64,000 nucleotides of DNA from Botryllus schlosseri. Its lineage: Eukaryota. The DNA lies in contig CM119374.1 of the NCBI GenBank assembly GCA_051294905.1, forward strand, positions 20,832,001 through 20,896,000. The letters run 5' to 3'. Under the pieces are notes generated by a model, which saw only the letters and a program-made list of their open reading frames with translations, was not told the origin of the DNA and did no database searches. Below are positions 13,877-63,315 of this stretch, piece by piece. Every line of letters begins with the position of its first letter. The stretch's first letter is position 1. Both the position numbers and the translations under genes were made by a program.

Positions 13877-14360
13877 GGCTAAGATAAATTCGCGAACACC
13901 TCGTCTCCACAGAGGTCATAAGTGCGTGTTTCGCATTAAATACGCTACATGTTGAAGAAATTAGAACGTCACGTTTGCATAAAAAGAAGCATTAGAACTT
14001 GGAACTGTACATGATTATATGACTTTTGAAGAAAGTGCGCAGAACGAGCTAGCGAACAGACTCCAAGCATACACACGTAAAAAGGTAAACTATATTAATG
14101 CAGTAACTTTATACAAACTCAGGGGACTCAGAGAAGTGTTTGGCTCACAATTCAGCAAATCACACCAGTAGGGCCTAATCTAGTGGCTAAATTTGCAGTG
14201 TTAGTTACGTGCATGTATTGAATATGTGTTCAGTGTGTACTGTGCAGTGTTAAGCTACGTGCACCGCAATCATTGTCAAAACACGGCCACGCCATAATCA
14301 GTACCATCTCGAGAAAAATCTACATAAAAACGATGTCTGTTAGGCTTTTCCATTCTAAAT

Positions 14361-14485
14361 TTACAACGGAAAGTCGGCCCCGCCTCTTTTACGCCTCACG
14401 ATGTAAACAACCAGTGCCACGACGAGCGCAATCAGCAGAACCCCGCCGATGACGCCGAACGCGATCGCCAAGTCTCTGTATTGAA
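14361..14485 (-). CDS. exon 58: TM helix, short tail, stop
   Basis: 125 coding nt; QYRDLAIAFGVIGGVLLIALVVALVVYIVRRKRGGADFPL*. Confidence 0.85.
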
Positions 14486-17400
14486 CTGAGAAGACACGCG
14501 TTTGTCAGCGAGGATCGAAACGCAAATAGCAAAATGTCAAATACCTGTATCTTCACATCTGGAACCCGTGAATGAGCTTGTGCATCTAAAATGAATTGTG
14601 TACAGAGTTGGTCAGACGTAGTCATCGTTGGTACTCAGTAGTAGATTTGAGGCCGTTTGGGAACTACTGTTATAGGCCAAAGGTCAGTGTTTCATTGAAA
14701 GACTACTCCAACTCGTCTTAAATCCCTCATAACCTATCATTCCGTCGAAATCTTGGGGTGTTTTGAATTCGAATTATTCTTAATATACTGAACTGAGAGA
14801 TCAATATAAAATGCTCACAGGCATGACGGTGATCCGTTTGTGGCGCTTCGAATGCAGGTGCCACCGTTGCTGCAGTACGAGTCGGTGCATTGATCTAAAA
14901 TCGAATCAACCTTGTTAACACTGTCGTCTTCAAGGAATACGGACGGTAAAACTCACCAATACAAGAGTCTCCAGTTGATGCCACTGAAACACATCAAAGA
15001 ATGGTGCATAAAAGCAGCGAATTAATATAGGAAAGACCGAGGATTGCGAAATCATGCAATGAATGGACCAGGGTTGGGCAGGTACACAAAAGACAAAAAC
15101 CCTTGGCTACCGATATGTATTTTGTTGTATTAAATGATAGCAATTCAACAGGGCATTGATAATAACAAGCTATAAGCAGATGTGGTTAGTAAAAAAGTAC
15201 TTCTACTTTTACGGAGTACTCGAGTACGTTTTGACAACCTCCGCTTCTACTTCGGTGTTTCATGTCGAACTATGCCTATTTACAATTTTTACAATTTGTA
15301 TTTTGTAAAGTACAAAGTAATTAATGGAAATGTTTGCATCGTTTTCATGATTGAAATTGCGTTAACAACCACGCCCAATAGCACCTGTATCACAGCAACT
15401 GAATATATTTTCGAACATTGCCCATATTTGTAGTCTTTCGTTTTTTAGACACCTCTGATTAACTTCTAAAAGCATGGGACAACCTCGACTAAATCTACTT
15501 TTTGTAACTTAACATAGCACCATTTCGCAACTACCATTTGTTGTTGTTATGATACATCTCGGAAATCTCTGCTTTCACTCCTAATTCAGTCGAAATGTAC
15601 GGCGTTACTTCTACTTCTATTTGAGTACCTTGTTTCCTTTGATCATCTCTGTGTATAAGACAGAGTCCAGTTCTGCATTCAATATACAATATGAATACAC
15701 AAAGCGAATATTGCTTGTGAATAAATCACAATAGTTTGCTGCTGACCTATTGCAATGAACTGAAAGCATGCGCTGGTGTCTATAACATAGTGCTACACAG
15801 CACGAAATAACTGACAAAGAAATGCAATATCTCACGTGTGAATCCCGTGTTGCAAACGCACCGGTAAGAACCGACCGTGTCGGTGCATGTCGCGTTGGCA
15901 AAGCATATCGAAAGCGTGTCGCATTCGTCGTCATTAGCGCACGAGCTTCCGTCGCCGGTATATCCGGCGTTGCAGGTACAGGTGAAGTTACCGGGCGTGT
16001 TTGCGCAATTCGCATTTCTGGAATATATAATGTTTGTTGCAAAATGCTGTATCAAACAAATTCAGACTCGATAGTTACTGGCAACTGAATTGAAAATATT
16101 TTCACTAGCCAATCACCATTTCTGACCTGCATATTGCATATAATTGACTAAAACATTCAAGTTCTATTTGGGGAAGTGGAAAAAAGGATGGACGAACAGT
16201 TGAGCCCCATTCTCACATATTATTATACATGTTACCGAATATATTTTTAAAATGTATATTAAGTTCTGTGCTCCAAAAGAATCTTCAAATACACTACCTT
16301 AATACAACGAAACACTTCAGCAAGAAAAGCTGAGGGTTTTAATATATTTACGTAATGAATATACATTTGTATAGGTCAGCTGGAAAGCATTTCTACTTTT
16401 TTGGAGTATTCAAGTAGGTGCTGCTTGCGCAAGTGGTTTTCTTTAAACTACTTCTATTTATACCTCTCAGTATTTAGGTAAAACTACTCACCTTGTATTT
16501 AATTGACTGAAAAGTACTAAAGCAAGTTGTTGTGGCTACTTTCAATATCACAGGGTGTATCTCTGCACTCAAAACGACTAAGGACACAACAAATTACAAA
16601 ATATATACAGTTACTGTTATACAACAGATATGTTGCCCTGTTGTTAAGAAAACTTCACTCAAAGACTTTGACGGAAATGTCTCTCAAAACTACTTTCTGC
16701 TTTACAAAATCCAAAGTGCAAATGGTAGGTTATTTTGCCTACAAAACTGTAGAAGTATAATTAGTCAAAAACATAACTACTTCAACAAGTATCACAAGTA
16801 GGCAAAACTCTCTTGATTATTTCAAAAAAGTAGAAGTTCTTCTTACTAAACACATCTGTACATTAATATATTGGAAATTTTACCCCATGATAATAGGTAG
16901 TTAAATACAGCTATCCGAAATGGCTGAAAACACAATTATAAGAACAAATTTCATCACTTACGTATCACATGGACCGCTCGTGCATTCATCTTCATCAACA
17001 CAGGTCACAGTCCCCTGCAAATTGTATCCGGACCCACAGCCACACCTTTCCTCGCCGTTGTATTCGTAACAAAATCCAGCCGCGTCACAAGTTAACGTGG
17101 AGCAGTTCGATGCTGAAACAGGAAATCTCGTGAAGATATCGATATCATGAAATGAATTTCAGCCTTACATAGAACAGGCAAGGTGCTGAATAAATCGTCG
17201 CCGGCTGTCGCGTCGTAGTAATCAGATATCACGACAACAGCAGGTAGTGGCCTGGCTGTTTCAATCACGTACCTGGTGAAATTAATTGGTTCGGATATTA
17301 GTGCAACAAAAACATGCCCTAGTCATTAGTCATCTTCGATAATCGCGAAATTACTTCACGTAATTTCAGAATGAGCCACCACCGATTAATCGCTAAAAGT

Positions 17401-20400
17401 ATGTGATCCTGACCAAATCTACTTTTCAAAACTACTTGAATATTTTCAGATCTTTCATTTTTCCACTTTCACTCGAAGTAACCCTAATAAGTCTTGCAAA
17501 TTACTTTTCCGTGGTAATAGAGTAGACATGTACGGCGTTACTTTTACTTCTACTTGAGTAGCATTCCTGATTACTCTAACCATCCTCTGCTAACTGGACT
17601 CGGCACACCTAGCCGGGATGGCACATTTCAAAAGCACGTACTGGAAACTTGGACAGGCTAGAACTTTAGTTCACTTTGTAAAAATATCAGGTGAGGGCTC
17701 TCAACTTAACAGAGATTAAAATCTTGACTAAAATCCCGACCAAGCTCAACACTGATCGCCACAGTTTACTTCACTATACTCACGTCACAACGATGGAAGT
17801 ACCGTCTCCGTTGGTGTAAAGTGCGGACACAAATGTAAAATCGCCGGGATAACGAAGAGTAACTTGGCTCTGGACTTCGGCGTCTAAATCCGCCAAAGTA
17901 ACAGCGGCCCGGGCCAGCGACGAATTGTATTCATATTTGGTTATCACTTGCATCACAGTCAGCCGCGTTACGTTTCCTGTGAGAAAGTCAGAAGTAGGAT
18001 CGTCGACCAGTTTAGGATATCTAACTAACAACTATGAAAAACTCACCTACAGATAGACACAAATAATGTGAATTCATGGTTTACAAACCGGGTAGGAATA
18101 GGAATTTATGGTCGCTTCGGAAGCAGATATGGTAGTATTACATTCACTCTAGCAAATAATTTACTGAACCGGTGTCAAACGAAAGCTACGGACGCACTGA
18201 TTTCGAAAAAATAATCTATAATCTGGTCAGGGCACTGAAACTACCCCAAAATCGACCGTGAAATTCGGAAATAGGAATTATTCCGAACAATCAGAGCAAT
18301 ACGATAACCAAAACAATGAGAGGTGATCAAAGGAGCCTCATTGATACCCAAGTTGATGCAGAAGTAACATGTTACCCCAATGCAAGTAGTGATTTTCAAG
18401 TAGGTAAAAAAGTAAGCATTCTACGCCTAGTGTTGTATAAAAACTGAAAAATGCAATCTAAGTATTCTAAATTTTTTGGGTAGTTGCGTGGACCCTATAA
18501 CAATGAAATTTGGGAGGCTGATGAAACAAATAGGTCACCACTTCTGCACAGTCGTAATGACTGATACAAGTCATCATTTTCATGCTGAAAATAAGACAAA
18601 ATAAGGACGCAAAACAAAAATATGGACATATCTTACAAATGCGGAGTTTTATAGTTGTAGTTGCAACCTTTCAAGGATGCCTTCGAACTAGTTCATGGAC
18701 CCTCAAAGGGGCTCATGGACCTTGGCTAAGACCTCATGCCATATCTGTTTACGAAGCGATCATAAACTGGTACCTGTGCCTAGTTTCCTTACCGTGCAGT
18801 TAGGTGGTTTTGCATCTATCCTTGGGTTTATTATCTATAATCAAACTTGTGAATTTACCAATGCAGCTCGTTACGCCATCGCCGACGTAGTAAGTATCGC
18901 ATTCGCACGAGTAACTGCCAAAAGTGTTGTCGCAGACGGCATTTGAGTGACAAAGACTGCTGCTTTGCAAGCACTCGTCCGTGTCCACGCAGTTGGTGCA
19001 AGTTTGCGAAGCCAAACACGTAGGGCCCGTCGTTCCGTTTGAGCATTCGCAGCTGTAACTGCCGAGAGTGTCCTGGCAAACTCGATCGTTCGGACAGTCA
19101 AAGCTTCCGTTAGCGCATTCGTCGGTGTTGTTGCAGTTAGTACCTGATGCGGGACACAGATGATGGAAATGTTGTGCAGTGGGTAAACTGATACTTTGAC
19201 ATGCACCAAGATGAGGCTGACATATATTCGGCGCTCAACTTTCAGGTAAATAGATATATATATTCAATTTATATAACAATTCTTTTATAAGCTACATTTG
19301 GCGTACTGCATCCAATCCTTTTTTGTGTCATGTAACATTTGAATTTCAAGTTTGAATGCGCACTCTCTCTATCTCCACATTGTGACATATCAGTGGACCT
19401 GTGACACCTTGGAAATCTATTTTTGCAGTGGCTTATATCCAGATGCCGTTGTTTCAATGAGAAATTTTGAGTCGTTTTTCGTCATCAAACATTAATAAAC
19501 TATTACCTACTATTAACTAAATTATTTGCACTTGAAATTGTCCTTGCAATACTGAAATTATCAAATCTTCACACGATGAATTTAAAATTATAAAAATAAT
19601 ACTTGTAATGACACTCAGTCTTGCCTTCGGCGAACATGTAACGGGAATTTAATCGTTTCAGACTACAGAGATATGAGAGCCACTGTTCTGACGCTAGTCC
19701 CAAGTTTATTGCATATGTTTGAGTAGATCACACAAAGACAGCACAGGCATGGTAAAAGGTTAGATCAGTGGTTCTCAACCTTTTTGTCTTCGCGGACCCC
19801 TTTCGGACCATCACGGACCCCCACAAAGTTTTAGTTCGCATTCAACTCAATTATCGTGCAATCGTCATCTGTCTTTTGCAAATGATAACTGTAGGCTTAG
19901 TGATAAACAGCAACAAAATGACTTTTGGTGAAAATAAGATCATACTATTCATGTAGAAATTCGGTTGAATTCTAATATTTCAAAGCGAATTCTGCAACTG
20001 CATTTCCTGAAATACGTGATCGTATCTTGAAAATCCGTGAATTTGATTTGATATGAACGAGTGCCGAAAATCCATTTCGATAAATACAGATGGTGGCGAA
20101 TGTGATAATAACGTGTAATAACGCGACGACACCTTTGGGTATGATAGCAACAAATATAGCACCAACATTGACAAATTACTGAACACACAACGTCGAGTGT
20201 GATCATTTGAATCTAGCACAGTGGTTCCCAACCTTTATCGAATAATCGCCCCCTTCTCAAGCTCGACACAAATTTTCGCTCCCCAATATTGACGAATCCA
20301 AAAAAGAGACCTATATACGGGAAAATTATTGATCTAATACTGATTGCTGGTGAATTGACTAAAAATAAGGTCATTATCAGAGTAGGTGCTCTGAAAACCG

Positions 20401-23400
20401 GTTGGCGCGTCCATTTTCCGTTTAGTTTTGACAAAGGCAATTTTTTTCACCTAAAAGGGAAGATTTTGACCTAATAATTCACAATTTTAACATTTTTTTA
20501 CCCTAAAAACCTACTAAAAACCAATGCCCACGCAGTTTTTCTTCAGTTAGGATATTGCGGTACGTTCAGCAAAACACCATGTCAACCTATTTCTTTCATT
20601 TGACCGTTTATGATTCACAATGAGCAGATAATGTGCCGTCTACAACGGTAGGCCTAAAAAGTAGGCTAAAAGCTGTAAAATGTCGTATGAAAAGCTCACC
20701 GACAGTGCAAACATCTAAGAGAAAAACGAAATGCAGGATGCAAAAAATTTTGGACTTTGTAAACAATTTTGACAATTTTTTGACCCAACGTTACAATTTT
20801 GACAAAATTTTGACTTATTTTGACGTGTTTACAAAAAAATCGCCCTAGTTATGATGACCATTTTTAGTCAACTTTCGTGTCACATGCAGAATATGCCGTC
20901 TTCACGTGTATTTTTTGGACGTGGTAATTAAATATATCTAACAGGACGTTCTAACATTTTCGCCCTCCATCGTGCCCCAGTCAGCCCCTTTGGCATTTTC
21001 GCCCCCTTCTTTCTCAAAACCTCCCACTGGGGTGCGATATCGCCCCCATTGGGAACCACTGATCTAGCACCTTATCTTTAAGTTGTTATGGAAAAATGGA
21101 TTTTTGTAAACATTTCCAAGTCACCATGATTGACCTTACTCATCCAACTTATTATTTTTTCTACAATCCCCAACAAAACATCTCTAAACAGCAAAATGTT
21201 AGTATCAGTAGGCTATTGGCAATTTAGCAATTAAAATGAGTCTGCACAATACGATATTGCATCTCAGACGGCAATTCCGTTGATGTGAGCTCTGGAATTT
21301 TACTATAGTATTGAAGCGAAAGTGCCTTGTGATTTTCCCAGTTTCAAAAAATACAAATTAGATTATCAACTGTTTTTGACGCTTCACGGACCCCCGGTTG
21401 AGAACCACTGGGTTAGATATACTTGACAGTCATCATATATCGTGAAGAGACCTATAAGTTTCATTTATCGCGTATATTTTTAAGTTTGAGATATCAAATA
21501 ATGGAATAGGCATTGGGATCTGGGATCTTAAAATTGCAAACCATTTTCCACGAATCCGTTAGGACAATAGCAGTGGTAATTTCCCTCTGTGTTGTTGCAA
21601 GCAAAGTTGTCCTCACATACGGATGAAGCGCATTCGTCAATGTCGCTACAGATCTGAAGTAGGAAAACATTTTAATATTGAAAAAAATATATGTCAAGCG
21701 ATATCGCTGATTTTTTCGATTGGCGGGTTCATGATGCATGCACAACAGACATCTCGACAACTAGAATTAACGCGTAAAAGGAGTAGATTTATCGGCAGTT
21801 TATGACTGATGTTCCTCGAATGTAAGTGGTTCGCAAGGCTATCTGAGCTATACTGTAACTGTAACCAGATAAAGCCAACTTGAGTACTTTCCCAGCAGTA
21901 ATGTTACACAGAGATGGCCCGTAAAGAATTAGTTCTACTTTTTCAAAGTACTCAGGCTGTTTTCGCTAACTTACCCCTGATGATACATCGCATAACATAA
22001 TCATGTCAACGCATCATCAAATGGGCATTGTGCAATATGAATATAGGCAGTTCTATATAAATATGTGCATCGTTAGGAAATTGCATCTTTTTCAGCTAAT
22101 CGTAAAACTAATATTCGAAACCCCTCCACTTACATCGTTACCACCAGAGTATCCGGTCACACAATTGCACACGAAAGAGCCGACTGTGTTTTGGCATACT
22201 GCTGTATCTGAGCAAGAATCGTTGAAGGAACATTCGTCACGATCCACGCATACTTCTCCATCAATCACGTATCCTAAAAAGCAATTCACGCTTGCAACAG
22301 GAACAAGCAAAGTACAGAACTCCTTTTATTGCTATAAATTAAAGTTCAAAATGTGATGTTATGTTTATAACCCTACGCAGTAGACCTACTATTTTTAATG
22401 TGATCCTTACCACTCTTGCAGACGCAGTAGTACGATCCCACAGTGTTCTGGCAATCTCCATCCGTGCATGTGATAGACTGGCATTCATCGATGTCAAGGC
22501 ACTGGGTTGAAGGGTCACCACTAGTAGAAAAAAGACAAGTTCACTACCAGACTGCAGTAAGATTAGATGAAGTCATAGGAGCTTGTCCTATCCTAGTGCC
22601 ATGTGCAAATTGAGATTGAAGTTGAAACACAAAGCGGCGGGAAACTTGATAGTAGTATATTAAGACTAGAGGTAATTAGTAACCAAATACTTCTACTCGT
22701 AGTACTTGAGTGGGTTTGTACATTTCCATTACTTTACAGTAAATACGTTTGTACTCTACTTCAGATGTCACTTTTTCCAGTTTTTCAAGTCAAACTATTC
22801 ATTACATTGTAAAGTAATTGGATCGATTTAGGTTGCTTACACCAATTAAGTTAACATCAAAACTGTGCATCGCAGACCCAATATAATACTAACATATTTT
22901 CCGAAATCACACCTATTCTTATCATCATCATTAGTCACCGGCTCATCCAAATCTACTACTTTAAACTGATCGCTTGAGCATTTCAAAATCCCTCCTGATT
23001 TTCCTTACACTTAAAGTAGTTACCGCATACCTCGAAATTTGTTACTGCCCCTTGTAATCAGGTAGATATTTACGGCATCACTTCAAGTCGTGCTAGAATA
23101 TAAGTACCAACAGTAACCACAGTTTGTCAAAATAGTCAGCATTGCTACACAAGCATAATTGAGAAAAATGCCTGACAAGCACTCAAAAAGTAGATTTGGT
23201 TGTGAGCTTCGAGTAATCTTAGCAGTCATTTGTGAAATATATAAACAGCTATGAATCCCACGAAAAAGGTAAGCAGTATTGAGTCAAAAAATGTTAAGCA
23301 GAAGTGAAATTGGTCGAAAAACATAACCACTCGAGTAACTAGTACAAGATAACAAAACCTACGCGATTACTCTGAAAATGTAGAAACAATTAGCTACCGA

Positions 23401-56400: not shown

Positions 56401-59400
56401 AAAATTGTAAATCAAATCAAATTATTCCAAAATAATTATCTTGAATAATATTCGTGATGGAAGATTCAATTGCATAATCTGCGTTAAACACTGTAAATTA
56501 TGTTTCATTTCAACACTAGTTCACCGAGCTCCAATGATCTCTTCAGATGTTGATATCATATCCTGAATTAGATGGAATACAATATATACCAAGGCATTTC
56601 AACAGATATAAATCTCTATTAATTCCTCTGTAGGCGTTACTTTTGGCTTTTCAGATCACTGACAAGATGATATCAAGATTGAAGTACATTTAGAGCCACA
56701 AGATATCTAAACATGATACGTGCAAGTAGTGCACCAACACCTTAACACCACGAACACTCGCAAAGTAGTGTACAACGACTAGTGCTTGCGATCTTTGAAT
56801 TCATATTTCTCCACTAGCTATTGTGGTGGCAATACATTATGCATAAAGTTATAAATTTTTCTCATATAGTATTCGGAGGCAAGATCTGTAAGCCGGACCA
56901 TGCTATTAAAAAGTAACTGCGGTAATGATTTAAAGTTGTACATACCTAGTGAAACATATTGGATTGCCGAATTCACTTGGCTCCAAGAAATATCAAAGCC
57001 GTTTGCAGTAGGATTTGAGACGCTGACTGTCGGTGGTGCTGTTGTGCTCGTGCTTACTGGTAAGAAATCATAATTATATTATAGCAAAACCATATATCAT
57101 ATCTGTATGAAATATTACGGCTATGCTGCAATAGCCGTACACTTCAAATAATTCATTCATTCATTATACCAGCATTAATAACTAGGGTTGGGCACAATGA
57201 TTTGAGTACTCGAATCTGAATCGAGTATTATTGTTTATGATTCGAGTCGAGTAGTAAAAGACGATTTTTTCGGGTACTGAAATTATACGCACCTCGGAAC
57301 TGAAAGTTAATTTACTAACGAGAATTTAGTTTTGATACTATTTTCCACTGAGAAAGCCTTGAAACCTTGATTGGCTGTGTCGCAGCGTACGAGACATAGT
57401 ACAAAGCTATGAATGTTAGCAGAAACAACACATTTCCGAAGTCATGATCATCTCACAACATTGTCAAGAAGTGCATTTAAATCAGTACAGTCGAAAAAAT
57501 ACCGATGTATCTTTATTGCGACAGAAAAAATACCGATGTATCTTTATTGCGACAGAAAACAGGCATTATGTTCTTTGCGGTGGCAAAAAGGGTACATATT
57601 TGAACTTTGACACAGTATATTCTGTTGTGTCGTCATAATGTGTGATACTCGAATACTCGAATCAAAGCGTAATACGTGATTCAGAATCGAATCACTCAGG
57701 TACTCGATCTTGCCCAGCCCGAGTAATAACACAATCGCGATCCAAGTTTTGCTGACAACCCGCACTCATATCAGTTACACAACTGACAACTACATATTTA
57801 CAGTGTTTGTTGAACAGATCAACAACAAGTATTGATAATAGCGTACAAACAGTACTATAATGTTGACGTGTGGATTTTTACCTGATCCAGCTTCTCCATC
57901 TGTCAAAGTAGCAGTGCTTATATCTAACGTTGATGCAGAATTCTTTTCGCCATCAAAAATAGCTCCCGTGCTTCCGGAACTGAAAATATCAGATAACAAA
58001 TAGTTTTGACAAATTCATTGATATTTCGCCTACACGACAGAGCAGCAACATATCGAAATAAAGGACAATGAACTTGCAAATCACAATAACGATCGTATAA
58101 CTATTCAAATATCATAGAGTCATGTATTCAAGCTTACTAAAATCCCACGATGGTAAGGGTGGTGTACAGCCCCGGGACGGCTGTTTCGATACGCTGTTGA
58201 CACGTGATTGAGACTTCAGAGAAATAGGGATGGGACCGGTCCAAGAGGCTGGTGTTGTAGGTTATGTCGGTGAATCGAGCAAAAATGCGTTCCGTGGGTG
58301 ATTCTAAGAACAGTAAAAATTTTATTTATAAAGTAGTAGAGAATAATAACCGAACTGATTACAATAGATGGCAACCTGAGTATCCATATGTTTGTCAGCA
58401 AATTTTGCCAAGAAGAATACTATGGGTATGGTTAAATGATGTCACCGCAATACACGGTATAAAATGAGCATCGTTACCTCTGAAGGAATTCAAGTGTGAT
58501 GCTTTATATCATAAATAATGCTAAACTATGTATTTGATACCATGTAGTAGGCAGATTACTATCACTTGCACTGACAATATCAGGGGCATCCTTGAGTTTT
58601 CCGCATATTTGGGTAGTTTATCAGGTAGTTCCTGGTACAGAACTAGAGAATTGCTTTCATCACAACATCCATTACAAGAATACATTTATTATAACTTGAA
58701 GACTTTCCGGGCGCTTCTCATCAAGGGTTTTCGGCACGATGAAGGGATTCAAGAAGATTCCCAAGTGAACACAAATATCTGTACCAGTCAAAATTATGTA
58801 CCATGAAATTCACTTCATAACAACGAAAAAGGGAAGCTTTGAAATACACAGTATAACAATGACAACGGTGAAGGTAAAAGCAACAGACAACATACACATA
58901 ACAAAACAAAATAACGGGAGATTTGTAAGTTATACAAGAAGAATATTTTTAGGGTTACGCAAACTGAGGTTCATTTACTGACTAATTGTTGATTCCAACA
59001 ACGAAACCCAAGTTTGCCAACAACTCTTGATAATAGGCACCCAACAAGTCTTCGAGTTATGATAAATGTATTTTTGCAATGAATGTTGTGATGAAAGCAA
59101 TTTTGGGTAGATTATTATACAGATATATTGAATATGGGAGCTGGGAAACAGAGTGCTGGGATTTTTTTTCAAGGCACTAGACGCGGAATATTACTAACAT
59201 GAATTTCATTAAAGTTGGTTAAATTCAAACGACCCTAGCCCACGTATCCGAAATAAGTACTATGGCGGATTGTGTGATGGAATGTTTTTGTCAAAAGCTC
59301 ACCGCAGAGTGAAAAAAGATGAACGAAACCGTCCAAGTAGGTACACAAGCCAGACTAAATATATTCGAGTATCGGCCGCATATGTACAATATGTACATTC

Positions 59401-62400
59401 TACATGTCTTACTTGTTGTTATTGTCAGTGCTTCACTTTCATTTGACGATACCGCACTCGTATTGGAGAGTGTCAGTATCCGCCCGGTTACGGAATAAGT
59501 CGTTCCAGCAGTAAGGTTACCGAACTCAACATTGACACCTGATGTGGTTTTGGTATCAAGCAGTCCTCCGGTGGCATTATACAGCTTAAACTGGTAAAGC
59601 AATACACAGAAAATCAATATTGGCAAGCTACCACATCCAGAATGATTATTTTCAGCATCGCAACTCAGGGTTGTAATGACTCGAGTCACGATTTGACATG
59701 AGTCATTTTTTCAAATGCGTAAAATGACTCGACTCGAGTCATTGTGGACTACTAGAACCAAGTCATATGACTCGAGACTAGGATGGCCAAGACAGAGATT
59801 TCTTACTCAGCCAGAGTTTTGTAGTAAATAAATGAAGTTTGGATATATTTTTCAAATTACCGCTAGAAGTTCCAGTTGATTATGTCACATTTTGATATCG
59901 GGTTCAATGACAAAAATGTTATATCAATCACTTGGAGGTGGTCAAAGTAATCACTGTTGGTACCCAAGTTAAAGTTGAAGTAAGGTCATAAATTTCTAGT
60001 CAAGTAGGGGTAGAGGTAATGATTTTCAAGTAAAAAAGTAAGTAACCTTCTACGGATATTGTTGCCTAAAAATCGAAAACTGAGTAGAGAATAGAAGTAG
60101 AAGAAAAATTAGTCTATGATCACAACCACTTAAGTAATTACTTCAAATAAGCGAAATCTACTTGAGCATTTTCATTTTCGTTGTTATTGACAACCACGGG
60201 ATATCGGTCGGGCTCTCAATTCGATAGTCTTTAACGGTAGTCAATATGGCACATAGGCTGCACATCATGGCATTAAGAGTGTTCGTCATTGAAATCATTA
60301 GAGTACCTCATAACTGCCAAAGCTCCCTTTCGGTTGAAGCTGGACAATGAATCCCATTTCAAAAACTGAGACTTGTACCGGCGCCGCGAGAATTTCTATT
60401 TCCGAACAGAGGGTGTTGTTAAATTATTCAGGTAGCAAACTCAAATTCAATGTTACCTAGGCATAAGTCCGTTCCGACCCCTTGATATCCAGCTTTGCAG
60501 CTGCATGAGTAATTTCCTGCGGCGTTGGTACAGTCGCTGTTGCTCACGCAGTCATTGGCGTATCCTTCCTGGCACTCATCAATGTCTAAATTGAATTTGC
60601 GACATTTCTGGGCACTTTGGGAAACGATGCACATTTTCGGAATACTTGATCAGTAAAACATGTTTAGAGAAGATATTGTCAGATATAGCTTACACGACAA
60701 CCGATCATAAGTACCCTATGGATGCCCGACGGAAAATTTAGCAGAGAGAAGCATGTCAATGTCAATGACGCTACTTGGTAAATTATACTTATACTTGAAA
60801 TTCTCAAATCACACTCGGAATTAGGTATAGACTTTCAGATGATAGAATTAGGCTTCAATCTTATGCTACAAAGACTGTTTTTAATACAAGGCTTTTAAAG
60901 GTTCGGTGGAAGAAGATACTGGAAAAGGTAGAATCATATTTAAACAAAGACTGGGTGCCAGTGTTTGTTTTGGTGGTTCCATCAGCGTAGTGACATCAAG
61001 ATATCTGAACTTTGGAATTTAGGAGGGCCATAGTGTCTTCAGTTTATAGGCCCATTCCGTAGCTTTAATCGATATTCACATAATAAAAATACAAAGGCAA
61101 AGGTGGCAACAGGTTTTCTGTGAGAGAATTGCGTTGATCTAGAAAATAGTGACTTTCAATTTATTGGACCATTCATCTAAGGCCCCAAGCTGAAAATGAT
61201 ATTTAATCGGAATAGACACATTGAAAGCCTACAATCTTTCTATTTAAATCTTGAGCGCAAATGTGCTTATTCCAAAATCATCAATATCTTTTAAAATCCT
61301 TAACACTTACCATCCCAATTTACTTAAGTAAGCTACTCATTTTGAATTCAAATTATCCAACACAAATTTACCTGAACACGTGCGTCCAGTTCCTGTGTAT
61401 CCGGAGCGGCAATTACAATCATAACTCCCGTCGCTATTGGCACATTGCGCTTCCGAATGGCATTCGTTTGAAGTGGACTGGCATTCATCGACGTCTGTAA
61501 AATTGAGCAAACGGTCGTATAGGTGAAAACTCCAAAAATTGGTTCAGGTTTTCATATGCTATAAAACGACAGGAACGATACAAAATCCAATAACTTTGCT
61601 TGTACTGGTTAGAATTGCGCCAAATTTTTTGTGCATCGTTTTTTTCAGACACTTCTAAAATTTCATAGGGTAGCCAGTGAAATTTGAAGAATTTATCTAT
61701 TTATTTTCATTAAATATGGGCAACACCTTTTTTTATCTTATAGCAATGTCTCTATAGGTTGGAATTGCACCAAAATTGGTGTGCATTTTTAGGTAACATA
61801 CCAATTTTATCAAGTAGTCAGTACAATTTAAAAAAGTCGTTTTGGAACCGCCCTAATGTACAATCTTTGAAGATATATTCAGACGTTGTGGTACAGGGGC
61901 TATTCCATGCCGTTCTTATGACTATACCGCGCGTAAAAGTGATGGAAGCCTGCACTAAAACCACTTTCAATTTTTTAAACATTTATATTCGTTGAATAAA
62001 TGATAAAGACTCAAACCTGTGCAAGACTCTCCGTTTCCAGTATATCCAGTGTTGCAGTTGCATTCATAACTTCCAATAGTATTCACGCAGGCAGCGTTGG
62101 AATCACAATTATTATTATTTCCTTGGCATTCGTCAACATCTTAAGTAATTTAGATTACAGATGAGTTGTATCGTATTCATGATAGCTAAAATTCATCAGT
62201 TGTTATATCATACCGATATATCATTATCGTGAAGCACCATATTTCCAATAAATTTGATAAATATGATTGGTCAGACTAGCTCCTTTACCATGTTAATAAG
62301 ACTGGGAAATCTAGCAAGGCTGGATTCGTTTCTGATGCTTTATCTGCCTGTGTATATATGTAGGCATAATCACCAGCCATCTCCTGGGTTATTGATTTGT

Positions 62401-63315
62401 TTGCAGATTGGACGCAATTTTTAAATTGACAAAGTTAATTGACTAAATCTTAAAGGACTTTTGCACGATTTGAACAAAACAGGGGCACACCAGGAAACAT
62501 GTCTGCTTATAAATATTTTGGTAATTTTAAAGTTATGATGACCCATTATCTTATCCAGCTTAACCTTGCCCCAAACGTACCATACCATGCTAAATTAGAA
62601 ACCCAGTTCGCGGGCCGCACACCACTCAAAATTAGCATTTATTCACGGTCAGCACAAATGCTTTGTTATCGATTGTTGATGTACAATGTTCTTTCCAATT
62701 TTCTACTAGTTACTGACGATTGCCCCTGACGAGTGTCAGTCGAAAATATCCGGGTTCATTTCAATATGAATATAATGTTCAATTGTATATTGAAGTTCTC
62801 TACCTCCAAGACGCTCTAAAAACGCTTCATGTCAAGACTGGCAATAAAATATGGACATATTGATCACATCTAGCTGCATTTTCACATCCAGTGTGGGTGA
62901 TTGGAAAATATTCATTTGATGTATTCTATTTTTCTATTTACCATAGCAGATGTTTCTTTATAAAAACTGAAGGCATGAATTTTATTTGTATTTCCAACAT
63001 AGACGTAAAACGGAAGTGGAATAGTGATCATTCCGTAAATAGGCCTCTTGCTAACAACGGAAACATTCCTCTCACCGGTTAGGCAGTTGCTAATGGTAAC
63101 AACTGAGCTTTCGCACTGTGAATTAACAGCTTTGATCTCGACCGAGTACGACGAGCCAGATACCAAATCGCAGATCTGTGTCTCGGTGACATTTCTGTCC
63201 ACGACCCTCTCGCCGACAACGCTGATCTTGAAATTGTCCTGAGCCGACGTGAAATTGACTCCGATGCAAGTCGCGCTTGCCGGGCCACATACCGCGCTGG
63301 TGACAGGTGGCGGAC
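14361..63315 (-). CDS. Giant 5'-partial type I transmembrane FN3/SEA/cbEGF protein (58 exons, ~3300 aa in window; 25 FN3, 3 SEA, 19 EGF, TM, short tail)
   Basis: Manual splicing of 58 GT-AG exons. Summed length 9902 nt = 2+3300 codons with matching phases at every junction. FN3 W/Y and L-x-P/A-G-T-x-Y motifs, D-I-D-E-C cbEGF motifs, SEA-type segments, hydrophobic TM, then RRKR and stop. No signal-peptide exon found, so the gene continues beyond 64000. Confidence 0.9.
14545..14585 (-). CDS. exon 57: juxtamembrane EGF C-part
   Basis: 41 nt, 2/1; CTSSFTGSRCEDT. Confidence 0.86.
14819..14894 (-). CDS. exon 56: juxtamembrane EGF N-part
   Basis: 76 nt, 1/2; QCTDSYCSNGGTCIRSATNGSPSC. Confidence 0.88.
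14957..14983 (-). CDS. exon 55: 27-nt microexon supplying an EGF sixth Cys
   Basis: 1/1; (L)ASTGDSCI; strong TGTTTCAG acceptor and GTGAGT donor. Confidence 0.82.
15177..15630. mobile_element. abundant AGTAG/CTACT-rich MITE family (ends CAGA(G/T)GTGGT../CAGAGATGGTCA); representative copy
   Basis: Related copies at ~16380-16858, 17400-17590, 22650-23100, 24440-24570, 34887-34990, 37330-37432, 52200-52310, 59935-60170, 63380-63570. Confidence 0.6.
15836..16017 (-). CDS. exon 54: cbEGF parts
   Basis: 182 nt, 2/1; NANCANTPGNFTCTCNAGYTGDGSSCANDDECDTLSICFANATCTDTVGSYRCVCNTGFT. Confidence 0.92.
16962..17112 (-). CDS. exon 53: EGF + start of cbEGF
   Basis: 151 nt, 1/2; SNCSTLTCDAAGFCYEYNGEERCGCGSGYNLQGTVTCVDEDECTSGPCD. 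Confidence 0.9.
17169..17272 (-). CDS. exon 52: SEA-3 C-part
   Basis: 104 nt, 2/1; YVIETARPLPAVVVISDYYDATAGDDLFSTLPVL. Confidence 0.8.
17784..18024 (-). CDS. exon 51: SEA-3 N-part
   Basis: 241 nt, 1/2 (acceptor chosen among nearby AGs by phase); RYPKLVDD...YEYNSSLA...LDAEVQSQVTLRYPGDFTFVSALYTNGDGTSIVV. Confidence 0.78.
18859..19143 (-). CDS. exon 50: two cbEGF
   Basis: 285 nt, 1/1; TNCNNTDECANGSFDC...CVDTDECLQSSSLCHSNAVCDNTFGSYSCECDTYYVGDGVTSCI. Confidence 0.9.
19766..21410. mobile_element. non-autonomous hAT element (outer)
   Basis: TIR CAGTGGTTCTCAACC / GGTTGAGAACCACTG; TSD GGTTAGAT. Confidence 0.92.
20219..21061. mobile_element. non-autonomous hAT element nested in the former
   Basis: TIR CAGTGGTTCCCAA / TTGGGAACCACTG; TSD ATCTAGCA. 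Confidence 0.92.
21542..21653 (-). CDS. exon 49: cbEGF
   Basis: 112 nt, 0/1; ICSDIDECASSVCEDNFACNNTEGNYHCYCPNGFVEN. Confidence 0.9.
22134..22273 (-). CDS. exon 48: cbEGF
   Basis: 140 nt, 1/0; YVIDGEVCVDRDECSFNDSCSDTAVCQNTVGSFVCNCVTGYSGGND. Confidence 0.9.
22411..22520 (-). CDS. exon 47: cbEGF
   Basis: 110 nt, 2/1; GDPSTQCLDIDECQSITCTDGDCQNTVGSYYCVCKS. Confidence 0.9.
23490..24204 (-). CDS. exon 46: 715-nt exon with six cbEGF repeats
   Basis: 1/2; LECSDIDECDASPC...DINECDTPSVC...DIDECVSASC...DIDECTNLTIC...DINECNVATAC...DIDECLDESSC...CSCSVGF. Confidence 0.93.
25020..25127 (-). CDS. exon 45: EGF (lacking last Cys, supplied by exon 46)
   Basis: 108 nt, 1/1; INECLNMPSVCDGNASCADTDASFECSCNSGYTGD. 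Confidence 0.88.
25397..25485 (+). repeat. hammerhead-bearing element, degenerate copy
   Basis: TAGTTGCTGATGATTACCCCTGACAAGTGTCAGCTGAAAAATATTC...TTTCAATATGAATATA. Confidence 0.72.
25728..25840 (-). CDS. exon 44: SEA-2 C-part
   Basis: 113 nt, 2/1; VNTTVSDPISNETDLIAAFDGTAASKADFNTSQPLTT. Confidence 0.82.
26586..26784 (-). CDS. exon 43: SEA-2 N-part
   Basis: 199 nt, 1/2; PANIFTLEFALSSDFSFSVELRDTSSQLYKDYSQTV...ITVIGFFQGSVIA. Confidence 0.9.
27137..27379 (-). CDS. exon 42: FN3-25
   Basis: 243 nt, 1/1; TSAPANFARVSNAQDQRIQLSW...VLGTTYNYTIQAVNSEG. Confidence 0.9.
27785..27925 (-). CDS. exon 41: FN3-24 C-half
   Basis: 141 nt, 1/1; GTVTSTTNTSTTISGLSSGARYTVRVIVKYVYVGQSSGDVTQGVTI. Confidence 0.85.
28299..28409 (-). 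CDS. exon 40: FN3-24 N-half
   Basis: 111 nt, 1/1; ISSGPTFVISGTTSSGFDITITDVNDRESFEIEVSP. Confidence 0.83.
28466..30056 (-). mobile_element. internally deleted hAT (Charlie-type) transposon with transposase remnant
   Basis: TIR CAGGGGTCGGCAACC / GGTTGCCGACCCTTG; TSD ACATAGTA; minus-strand IASIFGSTYACEQ*F*TMKFKKSKLRSRISD (hAT C-terminal dimerisation motif). Confidence 0.9.
30437..30688 (-). CDS. exon 39: FN3-23
   Basis: 252 nt, 1/1; PSAPTLTLTNRTTDMLLLVW...LDPGTMYDIRVSAQNSAGSS. Confidence 0.92.
31554..31817 (-). CDS. exon 38: FN3-22
   Basis: 264 nt, 1/1; PLAPDFQISEVTANSISVTW...NLSPGTNYTIMLATVG. Confidence 0.9.
32847..32995 (-). CDS. exon 37: FN3-21 C-half
   Basis: 149 nt, 2/1, after a 60-nt intron; PSGFTKTVNSTANATTLTNLPSGTCFTIEITSVNSFGESSIIRGTDICT. 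Confidence 0.87.
33056..33164 (-). CDS. exon 36: FN3-21 N-half
   Basis: 109 nt, 1/2; PANATIPTATERGDTSISIVWATAAGADYYNVTVI. Confidence 0.87.
33776..34170. repeat. GACTCGAGTC-rich MITE-like element (second copy ~59665-59780)
   Basis: Both start GTAATGACTCGAGTCA and carry many GACTC/GAGTC units. Confidence 0.6.
34265..34404 (-). CDS. exon 35: FN3-20 C-half
   Basis: 140 nt, 2/1; NVASPTVEFNSKTPGVAYNATVVAISVKEGQGVQQFSEARSLSFET. Confidence 0.87.
34475..34607 (-). CDS. exon 34: FN3-20 N-half
   Basis: 133 nt, 1/2; PSAVSVINITTPVPQTWFRLLWESVIGADSYNVTVT. Confidence 0.87.
35971..36294. mobile_element. hAT MITE with 8 GGGGGCGA units
   Basis: CAGTGGTTCCCAAC ... GGTTGGAGAACCCCTG; TSD GTCTAGAA. Confidence 0.9.
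37047..37304 (-). CDS. exon 33: FN3-19
   Basis: 258 nt, 1/1; PNSPTRVSFQNINTNSLEVLW...LSPGNVYTVSVRARNGGGWS. Confidence 0.92.
37709..37836 (-). CDS. exon 32: FN3-18 C-half
   Basis: 128 nt, 2/1; GTSWTAGTELDFGMTYNATIVAITAARTVTQESMPYTISFQT. Confidence 0.87.
38345..38489 (-). CDS. exon 31: FN3-18 N-half
   Basis: 145 nt, 1/2; PSQVSSLLADTSNTQLRVVLNWNSVAGAQLYQISIT. Confidence 0.87.
38731..38979 (-). CDS. exon 30: FN3-17
   Basis: 249 nt, 1/1; APTAPVLELVNATTSSVSLKW...LTAGTVYSFTVQAENDGGNSTESTAFEQIT. Confidence 0.92.
39042..39180 (-). CDS. exon 29: FN3-16 C-half
   Basis: 139 nt, 0/1; ETKTVSGSTSVEFCQLLPATIYNASILSYYDAGTSAYSSDAVQQIT. Confidence 0.88.
39702..39829 (-). CDS. exon 28: FN3-16 N-half
   Basis: 128 nt, 1/0; LPPPSGIAISATNQTCFTVSWNEVPTATGYDITLTNISDGTT. 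Confidence 0.88.
40467..40730 (-). CDS. exon 27: Cys-containing FN3-15 (absent from ORF track)
   Basis: 264 nt, 1/1; PATPTIRQCSPLNATCFKLEW...DICGVTTGTLYSGSVFATNPVGSGAKNTTMTCHS. Confidence 0.9.
40856..41152 (+). mobile_element. tRNA-derived SINE (Deu/Nin-like core) in intron 26
   Basis: TAGCGGAGTGG (A box), GGTTCGATCCC (B box), then GGTCAGACCAAAGAC...GCTTGGCGCTCATGCATTA. Confidence 0.75.
41808..42071 (-). CDS. exon 26: FN3-14
   Basis: 264 nt, 1/1; PNPPDFSITAVTPTSITLTW...NLLPGAYYNLTMVAVS. Confidence 0.9.
42397..42520 (-). repeat. ~125-bp hammerhead-bearing dispersed element, copy with intact core
   Basis: Aligns by eye with 62693-62816 (+), 25397-25485 (+) and 53680-53712 (-). Confidence 0.8.
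42455..42496 (-). ncRNA. putative minimal type I hammerhead ribozyme
   Basis: Minus strand reads UGAUUA-CCC-CUGACGA-G-UGUCAGC-C-GAAA-AUAU-UC-GGG-AUCA: complete CUGANGA/GAAA/UH core, stem I, palindromic stem III. Confidence 0.6.
42710..42855 (-). CDS. exon 25: FN3-13 C-half
   Basis: 146 nt, 2/1; TSNALQETKNETNTALFTALSSGTCYTLRIKAVNEFGSSQTVERQICT. Confidence 0.87.
42932..43603. mobile_element. degenerate hAT remnant in intron 24
   Basis: CAGTGGCTCTCAAC left end and TTGAGAATCATTG right end; TSD not conserved. Confidence 0.5.
43949..45088 (+). pseudogene. Harbinger partner MADF (Myb/SANT-like) DNA-binding protein with BESS-like tail; disrupted
   Basis: Exons 43949-44087, 44150-44312, 44602-45088. 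LISLVRQHVH*YD...W..I...L and KWDSLRQKY...SGAG...W...MAFIEPY. In-frame TAA at 44000-44002 and two frame changes in exon 3. Confidence 0.8.
45149..46258 (-). CDS. Harbinger/PIF (HARBI1-like, DDE_Tnp_4-type) transposase; probable true start 46328 is out of frame by 1 nt
   Basis: 369-aa ORF with WVHP, EERLAVTLRFLAHG, AIDGKH (D), VGDEAFPL (D), RRVVENAFGIL (E), LHNF motifs. Confidence 0.92.
   Translation of the reverse strand: MQARSIWVHPILQRREQLGEYHRLVKEYELEREAHYFDYFRMKPQQFHYLIQLIGEDIAKLDTNWRKAVSVEERLAVTLRFLAHGDSFRTIAGSYRLGRSTVCNIVHETCTALWNNMRWTYMKTPSSASEWVEIAEKFEELWQFPNCVGAIDGKHVQMKCPANSGSLFYNYKGTYSVVLMAVVDAEYRIRFAQVGSYGRESDGGIFRDSPFGRALAANELQLLADREVDPGKPPLPYVFVGDEAFPLSYHLMRPYPGKYLAQPRYVYNKRLSRARRVVENAFGILVQRFRILLKPVPLKVENVDSIMVKAICCLHNFLLKHSPNYTECSTDDIIPEDRSMDHYTGNSTTIAKNVRNAYTDYFNSHPIIH
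46903..47011 (-). CDS. exon 24: FN3-13 N-half
   Basis: 109 nt, 1/2; PSDPGEPMVITKEASSIELNWTLSVGADRYELSLL. Confidence 0.87.
47581..47720 (-). CDS. exon 23: FN3-12 C-half
   Basis: 140 nt, 2/1; TANDVTIEFTGRSEGTEYSVSIVAKTDSSLYGAQQTSAATTLTLKT. Confidence 0.85.
47783..47918 (-). CDS. exon 22: FN3-12 N-half
   Basis: 136 nt, 1/2; PLSVDGLGVTTPVAQTSFVLTWNAVTGASSYDVTVT. Confidence 0.87.
48418..48681 (-). CDS. exon 21: FN3-11
   Basis: 264 nt, 1/1; APSIPTNARITSITTTSFAVEW...LSPGVAYDITVRARNTGGWS. Confidence 0.92.
48849..48979 (-). CDS. exon 20: FN3-10 C-half
   Basis: 131 nt, 2/1; TNGWTGTDSILSDGHEYTIEVKAETAARTVTQVGSMASLLFTT. Confidence 0.85.
49264..49411 (-). CDS. exon 19: FN3-10 N-half
   Basis: 148 nt, 1/2; PTAVTGLAAATDNVQRNVAVTWDSIQGAAKYQITLK. 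Confidence 0.87.
50236..50502 (-). CDS. exon 18: FN3-9
   Basis: 267 nt, 1/1; APTSPTLSFSSASETSISLSW...LDAGTVYSFTVYAENAGGNSSESTALEQIT. Confidence 0.92.
51086..51224 (-). CDS. exon 17: FN3-8 C-half
   Basis: 139 nt, 0/1; TLYNPVDSSPALFCNLQVSATYSASVSSFYESGESSFTTDGVSQIT. Confidence 0.85.
51610..51728 (-). CDS. exon 16: FN3-8 N-half
   Basis: 119 nt, 1/0; LPPPTNVRISVVNQSCLEVHWDANSFAKSFNATLTSNDQ. Confidence 0.87.
51796..52062 (-). CDS. exon 15: Cys-containing FN3-7
   Basis: 267 nt, 1/1; PGPVTGARCAAVSATCFKLEW...VCQVETGRLYNATVTASNDVGSGESVAITNCHT. Confidence 0.9.
52459..52579 (-). CDS. exon 14: FN3-6 C-half (alternative in-frame acceptor would extend it to 52618)
   Basis: 121 nt, 0/1; SVTTRNFAGLSPGTSYELKVNVVLPVLGRSELYFEAVQVT. 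Confidence 0.75.
53132..53250 (-). CDS. exon 13: FN3-6 N-half
   Basis: 119 nt, 1/0; VYSISDVTTQSISMSWTAIQGVPNYISSSNPFIADPVID. Confidence 0.85.
53318..53575 (-). CDS. exon 12: FN3-5
   Basis: 258 nt, 1/1; STVTGVTLYNITKDGMDVAY...PIGTPYQVSVAY. Confidence 0.88.
53680..53712 (-). repeat. hammerhead-bearing element, truncated fragment
   Basis: GTCAGGTGTAATCATCAGCAACTAGTAGA matches the 42484-42512 segment. Confidence 0.55.
54822..55088 (-). CDS. exon 11: FN3-4
   Basis: 267 nt, 1/1; AKVPSLTVTALGSSSIRVQF...VASGNVYLVSVTPEVDG. Confidence 0.88.
56031..56198 (-). CDS. exon 10: FN3-3 C-half
   Basis: 168 nt, 1/1; ECGNVSQSYNVPGLTVTVSDLTSNTRCSVRVQAF...SVTVTT. Confidence 0.85.
56946..57056 (-). CDS. exon 9: FN3-3 N-half
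   Basis: 111 nt, 1/1; STSTTAPPTVSVSNPTANGFDISWSQVNSAIQYVSL. Confidence 0.85.
57184..57720. mobile_element. MITE with AGGGTTGGGCA / TGCCCAGCCC ends and GAGTA/TACTCGA repeats
   Basis: Inverted termini; internal ~30-bp tandem duplication at ~57496-57555. Confidence 0.65.
57882..57979 (-). CDS. exon 8: SEA-1 C-part
   Basis: 98 nt, 2/1; (Y)SGSTGAIFDGEKNSASTLDISTATLTDGEAGS. Confidence 0.75.
58138..58303 (-). CDS. exon 7: SEA-1 N-part
   Basis: 166 nt, 1/2; SPTERIFARFTDITYNTSLLDRSHPYFSEVSITCQQRIETAVPGLYTTLTIVGF. Confidence 0.82.
58649..59103. repeat. inverted repeat, ~85-bp arms (58649-58733 / 59021-59103)
   Basis: AATTGCTTTCATCACAACAT.CATT.CAA.AATACATTTAT.ATAACT.GAAGACTT present on opposite strands. 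Confidence 0.8.
59413..59590 (-). CDS. exon 6: FN3-2 C-half
   Basis: 178 nt, 0/1; FKLYNATGG...EFGNLTAGTTYSVTGRILT...ALTITT. Confidence 0.8.
60307..60395 (-). CDS. exon 5: FN3-2 N-half
   Basis: 89 nt, 1/0; ILAAPVQVSVFEMGFIVQLQPKGSFGSYE; supplies the phase needed by exon 6; weak acceptor. Confidence 0.65.
60457..60585 (-). CDS. exon 4: cbEGF
   Basis: 129 nt, 1/1; DIDECQEGYANDCVSNSDCTNAAGNYSCSCKAGYQGVGTDLCL. Confidence 0.92.
61372..61494 (-). CDS. exon 3: cbEGF
   Basis: 123 nt, 1/1; [41 protein letters not shown]. Confidence 0.92.
62017..62139 (-). CDS. exon 2: cbEGF
   Basis: 123 nt, 1/1; [41 protein letters not shown]. Confidence 0.92.
62693..62816 (+). repeat. hammerhead-bearing element, copy with U16.1>C change
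   Basis: CCC-CTGACGA-G-TGTCAGT-C-GAAA-ATAT-CC-GGG followed by the shared TTTCAATATGAATATA...GAAGTTCT.TACCTCCAAGA tract. Confidence 0.78.
63076..63315 (-). CDS. exon 1 (in window): Cys-containing FN3-1
   Basis: 240 nt, phase 1/1; PPPVTSAVCGPASATC...LVSGSSYSVEIKAVNSQCESSVVTISNCLT. Confidence 0.85.

Follow-up and report, generated by a model that had tools for sequence, protein, structure and literature searches.

SEA-type membrane mucins have a characteristic build, in which a proline-, threonine- and serine-rich (PTS) domain lies on a single exon, a SEA domain carries the motif G|S[V/I]VV and is flanked by EGF domains, and one transmembrane (TM) helix is followed by a short tail (PMC13643018). 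MUC3, MUC12 and MUC17 end in a class I PDZ-binding C-terminus of the form S/T-x-hydrophobic (PMC13643018). PTS domains are recognised by a combined Ser and Thr content of at least 40% and a Pro content that often exceeds 5% (PMC4948705). Here, we examined a 64,000-nt stretch of the genome of the tunicate Botryllus schlosseri (GenBank assembly GCA_051294905.1, contig CM119374.1, positions 20,832,001 to 20,896,000 of the forward strand; hereafter the window), whose minus strand encodes a very long series of fibronectin type III (FN3), SEA and EGF modules ending in one TM helix. The initial annotation of this region had described a mucin-less rod. An upstream mucin-type exon, together with RNA splicing, instead suggests that the closest kind is a membrane mucin of the SEA type, into which an FN3/EGF stalk has been inserted, and we put the probability that the gene encodes a membrane-tethered mucin-like glycoprotein with such a stalk at about 0.6.

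Upstream mucin-type exon and extent of the gene

The gene was read for 70 kb further upstream, and coordinates above 64000 carry on the numbering of the window. The in-window part had been called 5'-partial, correctly so because the gene runs on past 64000: exons on the same strand were found upstream of that position, and the upstream part of the gene reaches ~40 kb past the window end. The search for 5' exons beyond 64000 that the initial annotation had proposed thus yielded FN3 domains (five in total, one of them lying between a SEA-like module and the EGF array), the SEA-like module itself (SEA0), 20 calcium-binding EGF (cbEGF) domains and a mucin-type exon. The mucin-type exon lies ~20 kb upstream of the window end and encodes a repeat composed of 24.8% T, 14.8% S, 4.5% P and 16.4% D+E, with zero Cys and 87 N-x-S/T sequons. 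It holds ~50 copies of a 27-residue (81-bp) unit, organised into higher-order repeats of 123 and 150 residues, and a Pfam scan of this exon found no domain. The statement that there is no long PTS mucin tract therefore holds inside the window and fails for the gene, in which a Ser/Thr repeat exon of 1,769 residues lies upstream and is spliced in RNA to the EGF array. A reading limited to the window was, in this respect, overturned by the adjoining 40 kb.

RNA-type runs X1 and X2 (study P1), X11 and X12 (P4) and X8 (P3) contain exon-sized shares of both 14300-19300 and 79901-85900. Reads of X1, X2, X11 and X16 were mapped onto the stretch 79901-85900. Spliced contigs in X1 and X2, i.e., in one study, span the joint 83901|83099 between the mucin exon and the first cbEGF exon. 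The EGF-EGF joint 82974|81366 was recovered in X1, X2 and X11, the last of which comes from a second study, and the EGF-EGF joints 81244|80585 and 80463|80313 in X1 and X11. All four joints are GT..AG on the minus strand, and one 413-nt contig runs from the mucin exon through a complete EGF exon into the beginning of the following one. Outside repeats, the two introns resolved by 200-nt bins had a read depth of zero, compared with 3-12 in exons. The GT..AG joints and the zero depth in resolved introns indicate that the RNA-type runs hold spliced mRNA, and since RNA contigs splice them together, the mucin exon and the EGF array belong to the same transcript. Because these joints match the predicted exon ends to the base, they also lend some confidence to the predicted junctions inside the window. 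We noticed that a high-copy repeat ~17.3-18.7 kb past the window end, within the intron that separates two cbEGF exons, reached in RNA-type contigs a summed word depth of 1e3-1e4 with many loose ends, compared with 3-12 for the neighbouring exons; the repeat resembles a highly abundant mobile element that is transcribed.

Within the window (39-41% GC, zero N), stop-free segments of the minus strand contain dozens of FN3-like and Cys-rich EGF-like pieces. An exon chain was obtained by dynamic programming from a codon log-odds score and donor/acceptor matrices and was afterwards inspected by hand, guided by the repeats. The resulting splice model comprises 57 exons between 63315 and 14361, each bounded by AG and GT, which join into a single frame that stays open for 3,281 codons, up to TAA 14363-14361. 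Its end points coincide with those annotated initially (stop at 14361, first in-window exon 63076-63315), and its domain order is FN3, 3 cbEGF, FN3, SEA1, 23 FN3, SEA2, 12 cbEGF, SEA3-like, 4 EGF, TM helix, 12-residue tail and stop. Splicing the listed region thus reproduced the FN3/SEA-like/EGF order claimed before, and one open frame with a single TM helix bears out the idea of one giant single-pass (type I) surface protein. The giant size stands, and the length given as >3300 aa becomes 3,281 aa in the spliced in-window model.

From 83099 down to 63315, consecutive domain exons share one strand and phase 1-1, are never more than ~2 kb apart, and show neither a terminal- nor an initial-exon signature. 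As every exon is of phase 1-1, phase compatibility alone is not proof of continuity. We consider it probable that the window represents the 3' half of a single gene of ~91 kb and >90 exons, encoding a type I membrane glycoprotein of ~6,500 residues. A paralog search of the genome with two probes, the SEA2 exon and a Cys-type FN3 exon, found no paralog; the FN3 probe matched only its own locus and an internal duplicate, and the gene is single-copy by both probes.

Domain content of the predicted protein

A hidden Markov model (HMM) built from 12 single-exon FN3s (alignment A1) found exactly 25 FN3 domains in the spliced in-window protein, 13 of which were not in the training set, in the arrangement 1 + 1 + 23; this equals the 25 counted initially. 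In a six-frame scan of 144 kb with the same model, matches were confined to the minus strand between 27132 and 67542, so that the FN3 signal is specific to one strand and lies far above chance. Alignment A1 displays the FN3 hallmarks, namely the conserved Trp of strand B, the Tyr corner and GxxY. Per-exon matches to Pfam fn3 (PF00041) remain sub-threshold (17-23 bits versus a cut-off of 25) because these FN3s are divergent. The AlphaFold2 model of exon 50237-50500 is a seven-strand beta sandwich with a predicted local distance difference test (pLDDT) score of 96.2, and a Foldseek search with it placed fibronectin, tenascin-derived and other FN3 structures on top (TM-score ~0.8, probability 1.0), which confirms the FN3 fold at the level of predicted structure.

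In the array of 23 FN3s, domains encoded by one exon (243-267 nt, phase 1-1) alternate with domains split over two. FN3 5-12 pair one-to-one with FN3 13-20 at an offset of eight and with 31-52% identity, such that 52062-41808 matches 40730-31554. Because the members of each pair share the single/split-exon layout and the phases, we read this as an old duplication of an 8-FN3, ~11-kb block. The first exon in the window is the fifth of a 5-FN3 block that begins upstream of the window and has its counterpart in FN3 1-5 of the 23-domain array (21-42% identity). A recent duplication involves a block of four EGF exons, in which 81248-80007 is repeated at 78251-76732 (~12.7-17.4 kb past the window end) with ~88% protein identity. 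Since all domain exons are of phase 1-1, the gene probably owes its build to exon shuffling, block duplication and exon skipping, and is probably still able to vary in these ways. The 4-kb intron inside FN3 number 11 of the array houses a transposon of the Harbinger/PIF type whose DDE_Tnp_4 open reading frame of 372 codons (45152-46267, minus strand; Pfam E 4e-31) is intact. The closest database relatives of this transposon are at most 54% identical, the best being in Styela clava. An intron of only 61 nt (60396-60456), easily missed by gene predictors, lies between the last of the three cbEGF exons and the FN3 exon that follows.

Sequence similarity identifies SEA0, SEA1 and SEA2 as SEA modules. 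The first exon of SEA2 matches Pfam SEA with E 1.4e-4 and 22.4 bits over profile positions 3-67 of 106, below the cut-off of 26.4. An HMM of Pfam-positive cnidarian SEA domains scored SEA2 at 21 bits in an alignment that is continuous across the GSV motif, and comparison with one Pfam-positive cnidarian SEA domain gave a z-score of 7.3. The SEA2 motif, FFQ-G-S-V-I-A, sits at the canonical autoproteolysis position, and the module is ~830 residues away from the TM helix. An AlphaFold2 model of its first exon alone, a partial domain, reached pLDDT 48, too low to be of use. Pairwise comparison of SEA1 with SEA2 gave a z-score of 6.4 (0 of 500 shuffles), and the ESM Atlas places SEA1 next to SEA clusters (score 0.91). 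SEA1 carries a degenerate motif, GF-Y-S-G-S-T-G-A, and is therefore probably non-cleaving. The SEA3-like module has the motif G-T-S-I-V-V and shares its size, its phase-2 split and its position between EGFs with the mucin SEA. It gave no ESM Atlas match and did not resemble SEA1 or SEA2 significantly, and a prediction of its exon-encoded halves as a complex scored 0.01, which is evidence neither for nor against a SEA fold. Pfam scans of the SEA0, SEA1 and SEA3 exons found no match, and a three-exon profile (SEA1, SEA2, SEA3) searched against the PDB retrieved only the MUC1 SEA chain at a non-significant E of ~1. Three SEA-like modules do occupy the positions first proposed, and SEA1 and SEA2 are supported by sequence, in contrast to SEA3.

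The EGF domains score 35-177 bits against EGF_CA (PF07645; cut-off 27) and are of the six-Cys type with an N-terminal calcium site D/N-x-D/N-E/Q-C. In the block of twelve, the 715-nt exon 23490-24204 accounts for 177 bits in six stretches, and the other exons score 35-53 bits. Consensus calcium sites number 17 in the window protein and 20 further upstream. The 19 EGFs (3 + 12 + 4) counted before were recovered, the last of them with the help of a 41-nt micro-exon (14545-14585) that brings its Cys5 and Cys6 and preserves the frame; such a micro-exon is easily overlooked by gene predictors. The final exon encodes a 24-residue hydrophobic TM helix and a basic stop-transfer tail, VRRKRGGADFPL, followed by TAA at 14361-14363. 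Direct reading gives this tail 12 residues, not 11, with the C-terminus -D-F-P-L. The absence of a ZP domain was confirmed, given that all exons between SEA3 and the TM helix are EGF, and four EGFs fill all residues of this interval, leaving no room for one. The same applies to a protein tyrosine phosphatase (PTP) domain, since the stop lies 12 residues past the TM helix and six-frame inspection of the 24 kb downstream of it found no HCxxGxxR signature and no other coding block.

Table 1. Positions of the modules and other features of the gene (window numbering, continued above 64000).
Feature	Coordinates	Strand	Basis
Candidate signal-peptide first exon	starts 105605 (~41.6 kb past window end)	-	ATG, hydrophobic stretch, phase-1 GTGAGT donor after 25 codons
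Two EGF-like candidate exons	92262-92393, 94294-94449	-	EGF-like sequence
Mucin-type exon, 5,310 nt, 1,769 residues	83901-89210	-	Composition and tandem repeat
Twenty 123-nt cbEGF exons	69667-83099	-	Upstream reading, six-Cys/calcium sites
SEA0, SEA-like module upstream of window	68076-68399	-	Similarity to SEA2 (z 5.4, 2/1000 shuffles)
Four upstream FN3	64044-67502	-	Complete the 5-FN3 block with exon 63076-63315
FN3 exon, Cys-containing type	63076-63315	-	FN3 HMM i-E 4e-7; Pfam fn3 E 0.006, sub-threshold; phase 1-1, AG/GT
Three cbEGF exons	62017-62139, 61372-61494, 60457-60585	-	Pfam EGF_CA 43 and 36 bits (above cut-off); six-Cys, DxDEC start
FN3, two exons	60307-60395 + 59413-59590	-	FN3 HMM i-E 1e-4
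SEA1, two exons	58138-58303 + 57882-57979	-	Similarity to SEA2; ESM Atlas neighbours
23-FN3 array, 34 exons	27137-57056	-	Alignment A1, HMM count, AlphaFold2/Foldseek
4-kb intron inside FN3 number 11	42856-46902	-	Flanking exons 46903-47011 and 42710-42855
SEA2, two exons	26586-26784 + 25728-25840	-	Pfam SEA, cnidarian SEA HMM
Twelve cbEGF, six exons	25020-25127, 23490-24204, 22411-22520, 22134-22273, 21542-21653, 18859-19143	-	Pfam EGF_CA
SEA3-like module, two exons	17784-17976 + 17169-17272	-	Position, size, phase-2 split
Four juxtamembrane EGF	16962-17112, 15836-16017, 14819-14927, 14545-14585	-	EGF_3 and EGF_CA 58 and 50 bits (15783-16061)
Last exon: TM helix, tail, TAA	14361-14473	-	Direct sequence reading and model
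Candidate polyadenylation signal AATAAA	13871-13876	-	Pattern only; ~485 nt past stop

Elsewhere in the genome, stop-free tandem cbEGF frames of 1,267-4,001 aa, apparently single-exon EGF giants, occur on contig C9 (7.46-7.82 Mb) and contig C10 (2.35-2.36, 3.14-3.15 and 17.86-18.08 Mb). Contig C9 also carries two tandem loci (15025585-15029719 and 15068570-15088831) in which a GT2 (Glyco_trans_2_3) match lies upstream of GH6 on the same strand (e.g., 15029174 and 15025585); in the second locus, a reverse-transcriptase-like insertion separates the two parts. Among animals, a GT2-GH6 cellulose synthase is known only from tunicates. Amphioxus proteins, in contrast, found no close counterpart in this genome (a Branchiostoma lanceolatum segment gave nothing at E 1e-10 and a B. 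floridae protein at most 53% identity), which led us to reject an amphioxus origin; searches for GFP, mitochondrial COX1 and MHC-I gave no match and are uninformative as to origin.

Proposed function and competing explanations

Read from the outside to the membrane, the protein would consist of a candidate signal peptide, the 1,769-residue mucin repeat, 20 cbEGF, then FN3, SEA, 5 FN3, 3 cbEGF, FN3, SEA and 23 FN3, followed by SEA2, 12 cbEGF, the SEA-like module, 4 EGF, the TM helix and the tail. A thread predicted to be N- and O-glycosylatable may be raised several hundred nm from the apical membrane on a semi-rigid stalk of Ca-EGF and FN3 domains, and thread and stalk together might form a glycocalyx or barrier layer. 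With textbook lengths of ~0.25 nm for a mucin residue, ~3 nm for a cbEGF and ~3.5 nm for an FN3, the ectodomain could reach ~0.6-0.7 micrometres. By analogy with MUC1 and MUC17, at least SEA2 may cleave itself at G|SVIA during folding, and the cleaved ectodomain would then be a non-covalent complex that can separate under shear and spare the membrane, as in those mucins. The SEA modules could accordingly serve as force-sensitive links, an idea that again draws on the mucin analogy. Because the tail comprises only 12 residues, there is little room for signalling, and it may only retain or sort the protein.

Several observations weigh against a mucin-like identity. The repeat is borderline for a PTS domain (S+T 39.6% versus at least 40%, P 4.5% versus more than 5%), and its acidity and its wealth of N-glycan sequons are unusual. 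No sequence test identifies SEA3, next to the membrane, as a SEA module, and ~830 residues separate the cleavable-looking SEA2 from the membrane. MUC3, MUC12 and MUC17 end in a class I PDZ ligand, which the C-terminus -DFPL does not form. As for the RNA, read-supported joints are limited to the mucin-EGF joint and three EGF-EGF joints, all upstream of the window and of the FN3 exons, and the bulk RNA-seq run X16 had no exon reads, its reads falling only on the intronic high-copy repeat. The gene thus resembles a SEA-type membrane mucin in build, and its membership of the vertebrate family is hypothetical, given the borderline PTS, the unsupported SEA3 and the missing PDZ motif. That a tunicate, a member of the sister group of vertebrates, has a genuine SEA-type membrane mucin, with its thread on a rod of ~30 FN3 and 40 EGF and with several SEA breakpoints, is a possibility that we raise tentatively.

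MUA-3 and MUP-4, which are EGF-SEA-TM proteins, tie the nematode epidermis to the cuticle, and the main functional rival is an attachment receptor of this kind, tethering the epidermis or another epithelium to the apical matrix (the cellulose tunic) with SEA modules as force-limiting links. The protein does have long arrays of adhesive-type modules (30 FN3 and ~40 cbEGF) and several SEA modules along its rod, not one beside the membrane; the GT2-GH6 cellulose-synthase signature in the genome implies that the animal has a tunic to attach to, and Pfam EGF_Mua-3 matched weakly, at a sub-cut-off 25 bits. However, a 12-residue tail is unable to bind the cytoskeleton as the long tails of MUA-3 and MUP-4 do, the exon scans contained no VWA or LDLa domains, and a distal, acidic Ser/Thr repeat of 1,769 residues is the hallmark of a repulsive hydrated coat and not of an adhesive tip. 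We judge this function unlikely.

On the structural side, the RNA joints cover only the mucin-EGF and three EGF-EGF junctions, and with all exons in phase 1-1 phase alone does not prove continuity, so the locus might give rise to two or more products, a secreted mucin-EGF protein and a separate FN3-SEA-EGF-TM protein, through an internal promoter or alternative polyadenylation. The uninterrupted run of exons from 83099 to 63315, which has neither a terminal/initial exon signature nor a gap above ~2 kb, makes such a split rather improbable, as do the 5-FN3 block straddling the window edge and the presence of both ends in the same RNA-type runs at similar exon-scaled shares. A decaying or non-functional mosaic gene, with a long frame left over from recent exon duplications, could be suspected from the 4-EGF block duplication (~88% protein identity) and the transposon in one intron. 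Yet the FN3 blocks are only 31-52% identical, 57 of 57 exons keep frame, splice sites and FN3/EGF core residues, and spliced RNA occurs in runs of at least two studies, which renders decay very improbable.

If the mucin-like reading is true, the cassette of PTS, SEA, EGF and TM helix either predates vertebrates or arose independently by phase-1 exon shuffling, and the protein would represent a stalked class of membrane mucins, so far undescribed, whose mechanical fuses lie in series. In the mucin-evolution literature, transmembrane mucins are reported to have arisen within vertebrates. A tractable example in an invertebrate chordate would make the origin of SEA-type mucins and of their self-cleaving, shear-sensitive anchor, whether pre-vertebrate or convergent, directly testable. 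The locus also illustrates clearly how, in nature, nested block duplications (8-FN3, 5-FN3 and 4-EGF) can assemble a giant surface protein from phase-1 modules.

Comparison with known membrane proteins

A search with the FN3 profile returned, among the best 150 representatives, generic FN3 arrays (bacterial, titin/twitchin-like and tunicate Dep-1-like) of ~25% identity, and the cbEGF motif was absent from all of these 150. The best eukaryotic matches include proteins of the tunicates Phallusia and Clavelina with Dep-1-type FN3s, which are ~25% identical and, unlike this gene, have neither EGF nor SEA. A homologue search with a 237-aa EGF exon, which covers proteins between 0.55 and 1.75 times as long as the query, yielded generic cbEGF proteins alone, none above 51% identity. 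No ortholog with the same build appeared among the best 150 representatives of the first search or within the length range of the second. That none of the 150 FN3-array representatives unites many such FN3s with cbEGFs hints, weakly, that the architecture is lineage-restricted.

The long, uninterrupted FN3 rod of a single-pass protein recalls the R3 phosphatases (PTPRB, PTPRJ/Dep-1, PTPRO and PTPRQ), from which this gene differs by having no PTP domain. FN3, SEA and cbEGF also meet in one membrane protein in UMODL1 (olfactorin). UMODL1 combines WAP and EMI modules and few FN3 with a terminal ZP domain, and is not known to have a mucin repeat; the present protein has no ZP domain. Similarly, Caenorhabditis elegans MUA-3 and MUP-4 share with it the cbEGF arrays, their SEA domain beside a single TM helix matching in position the SEA3-like module here, and a mechanical function may be common to them. 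MUA-3 and MUP-4 carry LDLa and VWA domains and a long intermediate-filament-binding tail, and are not known to have an FN3 array or mucin repeat. Pfam scans of the exons of this gene revealed no VWA or LDLa domain, and the EGF_Mua-3 match (25 bits) fell below the cut-off.

The likeness to SEA-type mucins is more extensive. As in MUC3A/B, MUC12 and MUC17 (also MUC13, MUC1 and MUC16), a very large Ser/Thr tandem-repeat domain is encoded by one exon, a SEA module carries a G-S-V-I-type motif, EGFs lie on both sides of the membrane-proximal SEA-like module (12 before SEA3 and 4 after it), and one TM helix is followed by a short tail. In contrast to these mucins, the gene inserts ~30 FN3 and ~35 extra cbEGF between the mucin domain and the membrane cassette, and has four SEA or SEA-like modules where they have one, the many SEA modules of MUC16 alternating with PTS. 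Its repeat is, moreover, acidic, proline-poor and rich in N-glycan sequons. The component modules are all known, and the gene would be an unusual variant among the membrane mucins of animal epithelia.

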